Positions 44,509-53,636 of a stretch of DNA of 64,000 nucleotides are shown one piece after another. The stretch covers positions 1 to 64,000 of the forward strand of contig OZ251236.1 in assembly GCA_965240325.2 (NCBI GenBank), written 5' to 3'. The notes under the pieces are model-generated. The model searched no databases and had not been told where the DNA came from. It saw nothing but the letters and a program-made list of their open reading frames with translations. This DNA comes from Rebecca billardiae RCC1528. Lineage: Eukaryota > Protista > Haptophyta. The translations under genes and the position numbers were made by a program. Each line of letters starts with the position of its first letter. Position 1 is the first letter of the stretch.

Positions 44509-44808
44509 ATGGACCTCTTCAACGTGCAGCCCGTGGCGTTCGAGCTGGAGAAGCACAGCACGTGCGCGAGCCACGGCAAGCACCGTGCGTACCACGCCAA
44601 CGGCCACTACCACTGCGCGCACCGCGAGGCGGACGTGGTCGACCTCGTGCCGGCGGTGGCGCTCGACGGCGCGGACGCGCTCGACACGGTCACGGACGTG
44701 GCGGATGTGGCGGACGCGGCGGTGGAGGAGAAGGGCCACACGTGCGCGAGCCACGGCAAGCACCGCGCGTACCACGCCAACGGCCACTTCCACTGCGCGC
44801 ACCGCTAA
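44509..44808 (+). CDS. His/Cys-rich tandem-core small protein, copy A (99 aa)
   Basis: GCCGCCGCG-ATG context; multicopy gene with synonymous differences between copies. Confidence 0.9.
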   Translation: MDLFNVQPVAFELEKHSTCASHGKHRAYHANGHYHCAHREADVVDLVPAVALDGADALDTVTDVADVADAAVEEKGHTCASHGKHRAYHANGHFHCAHR

Positions 44809-45383
44809 GCTCGGCGCCGTCCGCGCGCGTTGACCGCCGCCAAGACCGAGCCCCGCGCGCCCTGCGGGGGTCGTGCAGGCAGCAGCTGTCGCCGAGGCGC
44901 CGTGGCAGGAGATCTCTCGCTACCTGGCCTGCGACATTCTGCAGAGACATACTTGCGCGCGGTCTGCTGCCGTGATCCTCCTGGGCAGCGTGACAGCTCC
45001 CTGCGCCCTGCTAGGGCCGACCGCTCGGGCGCCTCGGACACGCTGCTGCTGGGCGAGTTCATCGGCGCCGGGTCGACCCGTCGACGTGGTCACGCAGTGA
45101 AGGCCGCCACCATATATATATATGTAGTCGTATACATCCGGCGGATCCGTTAGTCGGTATATGTACGCGACGTAGTCGTAGTAGAGAAAGAGAGAGAGAG
45201 AGACGAGACCGGTTATCGTCACAGTCGTCAGGCGTCAGCAGCGCGCATCAGCGCAGCGCATCACGGACAGATCACACGGTGACAGTGATGCAGACTGATG
45301 ACACTGCTGATGTCAGTGATGTCTGATGGCGGATGACTGATGGCCTGACCCGCGCCGCGAAGTAGCTGCCCGCGCGCTTCCGA

Positions 45384-46943
45384 TCAACCCTGCCGATCAA
45401 GCCGCCGCCCGCCATCATCGCTGCGCACTGGCGCACGAGGCAGCCCCGCGATGCACAGCATCGGCGCGCAGAGAGCAATGCTGTCCTCTCCGGATGCTGC
45501 CAGTGGCGGCCCCACCCAGCGGCCGATGGCGGCAGAGCCATGGCCGCACGCGTGCACGCAGCCGTCGGCCGTCACGTACAGCGCGTGGCTGTGCGAGAGC
45601 GCACAGGCGGCCACGCGCTGCCCGCCCAGCAGCGCCACTCGCCCCGGCACGCAGGGGTCTGCCGACGCTGGGCGGCCGAGCTGGGCGTACCGGTTCTCTC
45701 CGAACGTGTGCACGCTGCCATCGGCGCCCAGCACCGCGCTGCCAGCAGGCCCTGCACTGGCACTCACAGCGAGCACGCCGCCGAGTGAGTCGATGGGCGT
45801 AGGCAGGTTCTGCCGGCGTGCAGAGCCACGGCCGAGCTGGCCGAATCGGCCGTCACCAAACGAGAACGCAACGCCCCGCGCGTCTACCACCAGGCTGTGC
45901 CCGCCGTCCGCGCTCGCGCTCACGTGTACGGCGCGCACGCCCGCTAGCGCCTCGATGCGCCTCGGCGTGTGCTCATCCTGCTTGTCGCCATGGCCGAGAA
46001 GCTCGGCCATGGCGACAAGCAGGATGAGCTGGCCACCGTAGCCCTGGCCAAACGAGTATACAGCCCCATTTGACGAGAGGAGCAGCGTGTGCATACGCCC
46101 CGCCGCGAGCCCGCCCACGCGCACGCCGTCCAGTGCCTCGATGCGCGTCGGCGCCCACCGATCCTTCGTGTCGCCGTGGCCGAGCTGGCCGCTGAAGTTG
46201 CAGCCCCAGCTGTACGCGCAGCCCGCGCAGCCAAGCGCGAGGCTGTGCCGAAAGCCTGCGGCGATGCCCACGACCAGCGTACCACGGGGTACCGCGATCG
46301 AAGCGAAGGAGCACCGGCTCGTTCGATCGCCCAGCCCGAGCTGGCCATTGTCGTTGACGCAGCAACCGTACATGGCGCCAGCATCGCTCAGCGCGAGCAG
46401 GTGGTGCGCGCCAGCCGCCACCGCGACCACGCGCACCGCAGAGAGCGAGGCCACGCGCGTCGGCGTGTGCATCGGCTCGAGGCCTTCGCCGCCGTGCCCC
46501 AGCGCAGCAGGCGCCCGAAGAGGGGTCAGCAGCACCTTTTCGGCGCCGCACGTGTGGAGCCAGCCCTCCACGTCCACGAACGCGCTGACCGCTCCGAAAG
46601 TCCCGAGTAAATCGCAACGGTAGCCCCCGCAAGCCACCACCTGCGCGTGCGCACGCGCGAGCTGGAGGACGTGTTCGCGCGCAAGCAGCTCTTCCGTCCA
46701 CGTGCGCGACGCCGAGGGCAACGTCGCGGGCAGCGCGCGCTCGTGCCCGCGCGCGCGCGCGCGCTCGCGCAGCGCGTGCTCGACCGGCGAGCTGGCGCGG
46801 CCCGGCACGCCGCGCAAGAGGCGCGAGGTGGCGTTGGCGCTCGTGAGATCTTGCGGGGCGGGAAGCCAGGCGAGAATGCGCTCGATCAGCTCCGGCGCCA
46901 CGTCGGCGAGCGTGAGCCGCGGCAATGCAGCGGCGCTTGCCAT
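45384..46943 (-). CDS. F-box-like + RCC1-repeat protein
   Basis: LADVAPELIERILAWL..NATSRLLR (F-box-like); repeated AAG.H.L.L...G.VYS.G....GQLG.G RCC1 units. Confidence 0.88.
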   Translation of the reverse strand: MASAAALPRLTLADVAPELIERILAWLPAPQDLTSANATSRLLRGVPGRASSPVEHALRERARARGHERALPATLPSASRTWTEELLAREHVLQLARAHAQVVACGGYRCDLLGTFGAVSAFVDVEGWLHTCGAEKVLLTPLRAPAALGHGGEGLEPMHTPTRVASLSAVRVVAVAAGAHHLLALSDAGAMYGCCVNDNGQLGLGDRTSRCSFASIAVPRGTLVVGIAAGFRHSLALGCAGCAYSWGCNFSGQLGHGDTKDRWAPTRIEALDGVRVGGLAAGRMHTLLLSSNGAVYSFGQGYGGQLILLVAMAELLGHGDKQDEHTPRRIEALAGVRAVHVSASADGGHSLVVDARGVAFSFGDGRFGQLGRGSARRQNLPTPIDSLGGVLAVSASAGPAGSAVLGADGSVHTFGENRYAQLGRPASADPCVPGRVALLGGQRVAACALSHSHALYVTADGCVHACGHGSAAIGRWVGPPLAASGEDSIALCAPMLCIAGLPRAPVRSDDGGRRLDRQG

Positions 46944-47093
46944 CTCGACCACCGTCAGCCCTGGTCCGCCCCTCGCTCACGCCTTGGCCAACGGTCTTCG
47001 TCGGGTCCCAGCTTGAGTCAACACCCCGGAACGAGCAGTCCCGCCGCCGAGGCGGAAGGGAGCCACCGCGCGCGAGAGAAGCGCCGCCGCGTC

Positions 47094-51822: not shown

Positions 51823-52052
51823 TACAGTAGGCTCCGGTCCGGCCGTGACCGTTCGGCGTTCGCGCCCATCCGAGCGACCGCATGCATTATCTAGATTCTA
51901 GATTCAAGCTAGAGAAGCAGTCGAGATTGTGAGTTGTCAAGCGGCATCGAAAGCGGAGATCTTGAGATCTTGAGATTGTCGCGGGTAAAACGAGCGACGT
52001 CGGCGGCTCGGCGCCACTTCGGCTGATTCGGCTCGTTTTTGGCAAAGGCTTT

Positions 52053-52274
52053 GCGTACCACGCCAACGGCCACTACCACTGCGCGCATCGCGAGGCGGAC
52101 GTGGTCGACCTCGTGCCGGCGGTGGCGCTCGACGGCGCGGACGCGCTCGACACTGTGGCGGACGTGGCGGAGATGGCGGACGCGTCGGTGGAGGAGAAGC
52201 ACCACACGTGCGCGAGTCACGGCAAGCACCGCGCGTACCACGCCAACGGCCACTTCCACTGCGCGCACCGCTAA
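52053..52274 (+). pseudogene. 5'-truncated His/Cys small protein, copy D
   Basis: Lacks the first 26 codons; no in-frame ATG downstream of the in-frame TGA at 51963. Confidence 0.85.
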
Positions 52275-53336
52275 GCTCGGCACCGTCCGTGCGCCGTAAC
52301 CGCCGGGTGGGGGGCCGTACAGGCCCGCGACCGAGGCGGCGTGGCAAGGCGTCGTGACAAGCACTTGGGGCGGCCTGGTGCAGATCGTCCACGCGCGACG
52401 TGCACTACTCATCGGCATGTGCTGCCGAGCGGGGCACAGTGAGTGCTTCCGCATGCAGCCGATGGCCGGCCCGTGGCTGCGGCTTCTGACTCCGGGACGC
52501 ACTGACTTGCGGGCCCTGACGGGTCCGGGAGGCCGCCGGGCAAGTAGGATTGTTCAGCACAGATTCGTACGTCATCGTATAGTCGAGCATCACGCTAAGC
52601 CATCGTGAATTTGCCCTCAGCCGGGGGTTGGGACCACGTGAGTGCACTATATATATATCTCGACATTGGCTGCAGTCAGCAGTTAGCACAGCAATGCCGC
52701 ATTCCGTCGCCCGGGTCCGCGCGACCGCCGAGTCGGCGACAGTCTCCCGCGCCCGACCCGCGACCTGTCAGCCTACCCCCGGATGCCCGGATGGCCTACC
52801 GCCTGCTAGTAGTACGCGCACAGGACGGACAAGGTGGCATGGGTCGTCGGGCCAGGTCTGGTTTACAGCCCGTGGCGGCGTGGCGCGGCAGCGAGGATGG
52901 TGCACCATAGCTGGTAGCATCAGCATGCGAGGCAAGCGCAACCGCGCCCGAACGGCTTGGCGGACACCGGGTGCGCAGACACTCCGACAGCGCGTGCAAC
53001 CGCCGGCGTGGCCGGTGAGCATGCGCATCTGAGATTGCAGACTAGCCGCGTGTGTGACGTCTTGGCCGTCCGCGATCATTCCTTCTGACTTCTCAAACCT
53101 CGGACTAAAAAGGGTGTCGTGGGAATCGTGAGCTGCCCATTTTTGGCGATTGGTGAGCTGCCGCCCCTTCTGGCAGCGGGCTCGACTTCGTAGTCGAGCC
53201 GCGCTTTGTACCGCAATTGCCCAATATTCGCCCAAAAAATGATCGCTGCGTCCTACAAACGCGGTCGTTTGCTCGGTTGCTGAGCAAGGCAAGCTCGCAC
53301 CCGCCTTCGCACCGCCCCGCACACGCCGCCGCCGCG

Positions 53337-53636
53337 ATGGACCTCTTCAACGTGCAGCCCGTGGCGTTCGAGCTGGAGAAGCACAGCACGTGCGCGAGCC
53401 ACGGCAAGCATCGCGCGTACCACGCCAACGGCCACTTCCACTGCGCGCACCGCGAGGCGGACGTGGTCGACCTCGTGCCGGCGGTGGCGCTCGACGGCGC
53501 GGACGCGCTCGACACGGTCACGGACGTGGCGGAGGTGGCGGACGCGGCGATGGAGGAGAAGCACCACACGTGCGCGAGCCACGGCAAGCACCGCGCGTAC
53601 CACGCCAACGGCCACTTCCACTGCGCGCACCGCTAA
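53337..53636 (+). CDS. His/Cys-rich tandem-core small protein, copy E
   Basis: Intact 300-nt ORF. Confidence 0.9.
   Translation: MDLFNVQPVAFELEKHSTCASHGKHRAYHANGHFHCAHREADVVDLVPAVALDGADALDTVTDVAEVADAAMEEKHHTCASHGKHRAYHANGHFHCAHR

Follow-up and report, generated by a model that had tools for sequence, protein, structure and literature searches.

The first 64,000 nucleotides (nt) of contig OZ251236.1 of the haptophyte Rebecca billardiae RCC1528 (GenBank assembly GCA_965240325.2, forward strand; hereafter the window) carry several closely similar copies of a gene for a 99-residue protein of approximately 11 kDa with two His- and Cys-containing cores. We find that these copies are real protein-coding genes of a lineage-restricted, unnamed family, and as to what they encode we tentatively favor, as the leading candidate, a small, intact, non-secreted cytosolic metal-binding protein with two His/Cys modules. 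This reading is preferred because the protein has no signal or transit peptide and no dibasic sites, because no tailoring enzyme is found in the 22 open reading frames (ORFs) scanned in the window, and because the invariant residues are of metal-ligand types in a small modular protein whose gene is locally amplified. The reality of the genes, their architecture and conservation, their concerted evolution and the lack of known relatives are shown below, whereas the fold, the metal binding and the intact, unprocessed cytosolic state are what we infer.

Each intact copy consists of a 15-residue leader, MDLFNVQPV[A/T]FELEK, a core of 24 residues, a spacer of 36 residues that ends in EK, and a second core of 24 residues that terminates right at the TAA stop codon. 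A core contains 7–8 His and two Cys spaced as C-x16-C, and directly before it stands an acidic-hydrophobic motif with EK at its end, namely FELEK or AVEEK in the window copies. This layout of leader, core, acidic spacer and second core had been described in a first-pass annotation of the sequence, and the translated ORFs of copies A, B, C and E agree with it, down to the EK before both cores, the number of His and the spacing of Cys. The same annotation counted a family of five copies; the ORF listing and translation give four intact genes of 99 codons (A, B, C and E), whereas the fifth, D, is truncated at its 5' end and starts at codon 27. Homology in D begins at 52053, the DNA upstream of this position being unrelated, and D is probably a pseudogene or fragment. 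Neither tblastn nor blastn finds a further copy in the whole window. Copy A has 14 His in 99 residues (14–16% His in the family), and the 4 Cys in 99 residues (4%) form neither a CxC nor a CxxC motif. The computed charge of a core is +3.3 at pH 7 and +8.3 at pH 5.5, while the spacer, with 11 Asp or Glu in copy A, has a net charge of about −10. For the whole protein the computed pI is 6.1, and the net charge, about −5 at pH 7, reverses to about +5 at pH 5.5.

An open frame by itself is uninformative here, since several overlapping frames on both strands of this GC-rich DNA are also open in the ORF listing. That the copies are more than chance ORFs follows from the periodicity of codon positions, the pattern of substitution, and the existence of relatives with the same start and stop. 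GC content at the first, second and third codon positions (GC1, GC2 and GC3) is 0.75, 0.41 and 0.98, an extreme periodicity that is confined to the coding frame. This GC3 is similar to that of the conserved genes of the window (RPL38 0.98, eIF3L/PAF67 0.96, MFS 0.99, Myb 0.97), with the neighboring RCC1 paralogues at only 0.79–0.83, and codon choice is almost single-valued (His CAC 57:1, Asp GAC 32:1). The ratio of the proportions of replacement and silent differences (pN/pS, Nei-Gojobori) was computed among the intact copies from about 25 variable sites; the leader has 0.13, core 1 has 0.12, core 2 has 0.28 and the spacer has 0.86, with 0.33 overall. The core 2 value stems wholly from its first residue, G/H76. 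The first-pass annotation had described the cores as almost invariant next to a changing spacer and had proposed a comparison of selection on the two. The counts are as it described, with 5 silent and 2 replaced codons in the cores and 8 replaced codons in the spacer, and the ratios (0.12–0.28 against 0.86) point the same way, but with this small number of events the contrast between the cores and the rest does not reach significance (Fisher p ~0.36).

Conserved footprints are also seen outside the coding sequence. The 17-mer CCTACAAACGCGGTCGT has 3 matches in the window where 0.21 are expected, every one of them 85–103 nt before the ATG of A, C or E, and a diverged version precedes copy B (Table 1); the 17-mer is a candidate promoter, transcription start or regulator site. 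A GTAC core of this motif, resembling a copper response element (CuRE), was set aside since it is present in the copy B variant only. In flanks that have otherwise diverged, the island AATCGTGAGCTGCCC is conserved approximately 190–210 nt upstream of A (44317–44331) and E (53124–53138), and the island GTGACAGC approximately 180 nt downstream of A (44990–44997), B (48948–48955, minus strand) and C (50329–50336). Both islands are possible regulatory or 3'-end elements.

Relatives of the protein are few. An exhaustive phmmer search of 1.84 billion representative proteins returns only three, all unnamed and on short environmental contigs, and profile searches with two alignments (A1 and A3) recover the same three only. 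Their common plan is an acidic leader from the first Met, a core with the invariant pattern C..G.H..HCA, and an acidic spacer or tail. P0002 (81 residues, found in two ENA assemblies) has a leader, DFDLSIEK followed by a core, a 12-residue spacer that again ends in DFDLSIEK, and a second, identical core, and the repeated layout of recognition motif and core noted in the first-pass annotation accordingly recurs in an independent lineage. P0003 (60 residues) has a leader, a single core and an acidic tail that aligns with the start of the window spacer (EDVVPLEPFVAVED against ADVVDLVPAVALDG), with NHS instead of EK before the core. P0001, on contig L004, contains a 31-codon piece made up of EVEEK and a core, 85.7% identical to the window protein over 28 residues and, in the core region, 87.7% identical in nucleotides to the window gene over 27 codons. 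The 172-residue “protein” of P0001 was rejected as an artefact in which an antisense RPL4 fragment is read through into EVEEK and the core. Between positions 600 and 1200 of L004 the core fragment abuts this antisense C-terminal fragment of RPL4, and a tRNA-Met lies at 329–402; the contig may be a chimeric assembly or a rearranged pseudogene, and its genomic context was left out of the analysis as possibly chimeric.

Across the nine leader-plus-core units thus available, core residues C4, G8, H10, H20, C21 and A22 are invariant, with H7 and H23 varying in P0002 and P0003. The cores themselves are constant, but the relatives have 1 or 2 of them and differ in spacer length (12 vs. 36 residues). 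Between the two units of the relative L002 there are 3 silent third-position changes and 0 replacements, at a GC3 of 0.96 on a contig of 59% GC. Judged from sequence, the architecture of the family is conserved across lineages that share only 39–58% identity, and is very rare in public data. A word-indexed search of 5.8 billion protein clusters with a single protein gave no match, a collection of 15 billion proteins has no exact match to copy A or copy C, and no copy of the window gene is among the matches in the protein collections searched. Scans of viral contigs with the window protein and with P0002 likewise found nothing. The only match in the metagenome scan (on a soil bacterial contig, off-frame and opposite an FtsX-like permease gene) and the only match in the prokaryote genome scan (an off-frame YHANGHFH in a Gemmatimonadetes metagenome-assembled genome) were both rejected as spurious. 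Among public sequencing runs, X1 contains a 151-nt contig approximately 92.5% identical to 44682–44828 (spacer end, core 2 and 3' flank) with the H76 variant, and since no X1 record is at least 99% identical, the run derives from a relative rather than from the source genome.

The first-pass annotation had recognized no known family, and this holds in Pfam, in a PDB sequence profile search, in Foldseek and in the ESM Atlas. Pfam has no family above threshold for the window protein and none that is meaningful even at E<=10. Its sub-threshold match to MORN_2 (E=0.036, 14.7 bits against a cut-off of 29.6) is seen with the four window copies only and not with P0002 or P0003; membership was rejected as the match is below the gathering threshold, the likeness amounting at most to a G-x4-Y-x2-NG hairpin pattern. 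The PDB profile search gives nothing at E<=10, and with three family members as queries all ESM Atlas scores are below meaningful values. In the literature on His-rich peptides of haptophytes and phytoplankton and on algal ribosomally synthesized and post-translationally modified peptides (RiPPs), no description was found of the family or of any algal RiPP or His-rich peptide like it.

These results bear on the possibility that the units are non-functional, being either a DNA repeat element or an orphan ORF in decay that stays open because stop codons are rare in GC-rich DNA. The openness of the overlapping frames, the absence of exact copies of A and C from the 15-billion protein collection and of any copy among the search matches, the lack of an RNA run in the sequencing-run searches, the truncation of one copy, and the confinement of copy similarity to units of approximately 380–470 nt would all be in keeping with such an origin. 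It is nevertheless highly improbable, as the extreme codon periodicity is found in this frame only, pN/pS is 0.33 overall and 0.12–0.28 in the cores, the relatives at 39–58% identity retain start, stop and invariant residues, the L002 units differ by silent changes only, and footprints are conserved both upstream and downstream.

The way in which the copies resemble one another suggests a history of exchange. Their coding sequences are 95–98% identical, and similarity between copies is limited to the ORF with 45–100 nt upstream and 35–100 nt downstream, so that flank identity drops to background (0.3–0.4) within approximately 100 nt while coding pS is only 0.064. Copies A and B are 95% identical, yet the F-box/RCC1 gene pair that lies between them is far more diverged, at 52% protein identity and 77% identity along a 454-nt DNA arm. 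For sites 226/227 against 240 all four gametes (haplotypes) are present, and core 1 of copy E carries the F34 typical of core 2, with 3 nt differences between its two cores, which suggests conversion within the gene. The sharp decay of the flanks, the low pS, the contrast with the RCC1 pair, the four gametes and F34 in copy E lead us to gene conversion, and together they indicate old duplications whose coding sequence is homogenized by gene conversion, both among and inside the genes, and whose leader and cores are under purifying selection.

All four intact copies share the start context GCCGCCGCG-ATG-G, and the conserved 5' stretch upstream of the ATG contains no AG splice acceptor, which together argue that translation truly begins at this Met. 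Judged by its sequence, the 15-residue leader has 3 acidic residues, no hydrophobic core and no signal peptide, in line with the first-pass annotation. Being acidic and beginning at the conserved Met, which no AG acceptor precedes, it is neither a signal nor a transit peptide. No KR or RR, and hence no dibasic Kex2-type site, occurs anywhere in the protein; each core has EK at its N-terminal border and R-E or the stop codon at its C-terminal one.

It is also important to consider what the cores may look like. In the AlphaFold2 (AF2) model of copy A (mean predicted local distance difference test score, pLDDT, 51.7; cores 60–68) C-A-S-H forms a short helical turn and HRAY with YHCA a hairpin in both cores, and in the model of P0002 (mean pLDDT 55.7; cores 69–76) the hairpin falls on equivalent residues, with leader and spacer predicted to be disordered. 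The models thus give a weak, lineage-independent indication of a beta-hairpin module in each core, and in such a hairpin H10 and H20 would lie on one face and C21 on the other. Under the reading that we favor, each module would fold as a short turn plus beta-hairpin and bring C4, C21, H10, H20 and neighboring His together to bind a transition metal (Zn, Ni, Co or Cu). The intact protein would then buffer, store or chaperone metal in the cytosol, or alternatively work as a metal- or pH-switched module via its acidic linker, and the copies would go back to an old subtelomeric amplification, with gene conversion and purifying selection on the cores keeping their coding sequences alike.

The invariant Cys and His could instead belong to structural mini zinc fingers, in which a core stabilized by Zn (with ligands such as C4, H10, C21 and H23) would bind a nucleic acid or protein partner, the acidic linker would be an autoinhibitory or mimic segment, and the metal would be structural rather than cargo. 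A module of 24 residues with an invariant C/H pattern is typical of zinc knuckles or fingers, and the hairpin of the AF2 models, the basic cores (K, R, R) and the missing signal peptide fit as well. However, 7–8 His per 24 residues are more than a structural site needs, and H7 and H23 are not conserved in P0002 and P0003. Known zinc fingers are found neither among Pfam families even at E<=10 nor by PDB profile at E<=10, and the best Foldseek match in the PDB has E=5.4, the test of fold being weak as model confidence is low. We consider this explanation unlikely.

A more serious rival is a multi-core precursor from which cleavage behind the EK that precedes each core, and behind the last R of core 1, would free two cationic 24-mers. 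The acidic leader and spacer would then be recognition or neutralizing segments, and the 24-mers, closed by a C4–C21 disulfide or by metal and possibly further modified, could serve as a RiPP, a signaling peptide, a secreted metallophore or an antimicrobial peptide (AMP). We regard this as possible but doubtful. A similar motif ending in EK does precede nearly every core (FELEK, AVEEK, DFDLSIEK twice in P0002 and EVEEK in P0001), but P0003 has NHS at this place. The end of the core coincides with the stop codon, and the cores remain constant among relatives that differ in core number and spacer length. That the cores are better conserved than the spacer is as expected for hormone or RiPP precursors, and is at the same time the opposite of what is typical of host-defense peptide genes. 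A disulfide is improbable in the cytosol, and the scanned window ORFs include no DUF3328, BURP, P450, radical-SAM, YcaO, prolyl-oligopeptidase or other tailoring family, as the first-pass annotation had stated for the window. The matches in the Pfam scans of the 22 large window ORFs are RCC1, Myb, MFS, PAF67, TPR, BSD, RPL38 and EF-hand only.

Known multi-core RiPP precursors (those of ustiloxin and other fungal dikaritins, of cyanobactins, and of the burpitides of plants) resemble the family in that a short, conserved, recognition-like motif stands before each repeated core and core copy number varies in them as it does here. Burpitides need a BURP domain and cyanobactins the PatA/PatG proteases. 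The family described here differs from all three classes in what defines them, since the signal peptide, Kex2 sites and DUF3328 of dikaritins, the BURP domain and PatA/PatG are not found in the protein or the scanned window ORFs, and Pfam places no BURP domain in the precursor (only the sub-threshold MORN_2). Maturation of the dikaritin type needs a signal peptide for the endoplasmic reticulum (ER), Kex2 sites and DUF3328 enzymes, the DUF3328/UstY oxidase being the class-defining enzyme (PMC12048977). The repeated core with its adjacent recognition motif is present here (two cores per protein, and likewise in P0002), whereas an ER signal peptide, flanking dibasic Kex2 sites and a DUF3328/UstY gene in the window are all absent.

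The plant precursors of Ib-AMP1-4 (Impatiens balsamina) and of the Gly/His-rich shepherins I/II (Capsella) each carry several basic peptides of 20–38 residues in one small protein, the Ib-AMP peptides containing Cys and the shepherin peptides being His-rich, and the charge of the cores (+3.3) against the spacer (−10) is like that of these polyproteins (PMC4695807). The pattern of positive cores and negative spacers is shared, and the conserved part of the family here is the cores; the plant precursors are secreted with an N-terminal signal peptide, which the family here does not have, and there is no sequence similarity. Acidic pieces separate the cores in the Ib-AMP precursor. The RiPP or secreted-AMP branch that the first-pass annotation had offered is weakened by the missing signal peptide, dibasic sites and neighboring enzyme, and by the stronger conservation of the cores than of the spacer. 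On composition and the invariant Cys and His, we favor the intact two-headed chelator, its other branch, as the more economical. A bolder version of the precursor reading, namely a new algal class of ribosomal peptides or metallophores in which a signal-less cytosolic multi-core precursor uses its acidic motifs to guide an unlinked protease or tailoring enzyme, and the freed His-rich, Cys-bridged 24-mers capture Zn, Co, Cu or Ni or act on microbes, seems improbable to us.

The favored metal-binding protein also has to be set against known chelators. Histatin 5 of human saliva, a cationic peptide of 24 residues that contains 7 His along with K/R/Y/G and binds Cu, Zn and Ni, is a near match to one core here in size and composition. 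It differs in having no Cys pair, in being secreted from a signal-bearing precursor, and in its restriction to primates, and no match to it was found in the phmmer, profile or PDB sequence searches. Metallothionein arrays (e.g., yeast CUP1) and the Hpn/Hpn-like Ni stores are small, cytosolic, signal-less proteins dense in metal-ligand residues, and modular internal repeats and local gene amplification are common to them and the family here. Metallothioneins, however, have 15–30% Cys with CxC/CxxC motifs, against 4% and none here, and no metallothionein family appears in Pfam at E<=10. Hpn proteins are roughly a quarter to a half His, against 14–16%, with no Pfam match to PF28170 or PF28152 and an Atlas feature score of 0.43 to the HpnL cluster, which is chance level. 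The acidic leader and spacer are foreign to both groups.

Several observations weigh against the intact metal-binding protein. The case for metal binding is one of composition and invariant residues only, and a Cys content of 4% is far under that of metallothioneins. Overall AF2 confidence is low (mean pLDDT 52–56), and Foldseek with the low-confidence model has its best PDB match at E=5.4 and none at E<5. The conserved acidic motif before the cores and the variable core number and spacer length are unexplained by a simple chelator and suit a precursor better. The contrast of selection between the cores and the rest, as given above, is not significant, and the sequencing-run searches list no RNA run.

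Telomere repeats (CCCTAA) occupy window positions 1–2227 (~2.2 kb) and start the window, which makes the whole region subtelomeric and places the family 44–54 kb from the chromosome end; GC content in the window ranges from 64 to 88%. Two F-box/RCC1-like genes form an inverted, tail-to-tail pair between copies A and B (45384–48733, Table 1). No functional tie to them is claimed, as such neighbors are found at A and B only and the two RCC1 proteins share just 52% identity. A (GAC)n/(GTC)n microsatellite is present at approximately 49600–49625, inside the 428-nt divergent promoter region of copies B and C. Between 34000 and 44000, where GC is 0.81–0.88, very long frames are open on both strands (e.g., 33704–38635 and 41436–44072) and encode Ala/Gly/Arg-rich low-complexity sequence with no Pfam match. 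At the gathering threshold, Rfam has no match anywhere in the window.

Table 1. Gene copies, upstream motifs and other genes of the window, in window coordinates.
Feature	Position	Strand	Remarks
Copy A	44509–44808	+	intact, 99 codons: leader 1–15, core 16–39, acidic spacer 40–75, core 76–99, TAA
Copy B	49128–49427	−	intact; head-to-head with copy C, ATG-to-ATG gap 428 nt
Copy C	49856–50155	+	intact
Copy D	52053–52274	+	codon 27 to stop; without leader, start codon and most of core 1
Copy E	53337–53636	+	intact; core 1 with F34 as in core 2; its two cores differ at only 3 nt
Upstream 17-mer CCTACAAACGCGATCGT	44406–44422	+	103 nt before ATG of A
Upstream 17-mer	49757–49773	+	99 nt before ATG of C
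Upstream 17-mer	53252–53268	+	85 nt before ATG of E
Diverged version of 17-mer, AGTACAAACGTGGTCGC	49523–49539	−	before copy B
F-box/RCC1-like gene	45384–46952	−	convergent with copy A; Pfam RCC1 8e-52; context only
F-box/RCC1-like gene	46925–48733	+	convergent with copy B; 52% amino acid identity to mirror partner
Myb gene	22012–23325	+	
MFS transporter gene	24873–27341	−	
eIF3L/PAF67 gene	29367–31832	−	
Ribosomal protein L38e exon	56259–56450		Pfam 1e-32; within longer spurious ORF
EF-hand gene	57403–58260	−	

Trace metals often limit the growth of haptophytes, which rank among the major primary producers of the sea, and to our knowledge little has been described of the small metal-handling proteins of these algae. 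The family presented here is invisible to annotation, yet its signatures are those of a selected gene, and it offers a clean case of subtelomeric concerted evolution limited to a coding sequence of 300 nt. A processed precursor would represent the first such ribosomal peptide system known from algae. A metal buffer or chaperone, the reading that we favor, would add a new His/Cys module to algal metal homeostasis and might serve as a biomarker of metal stress.

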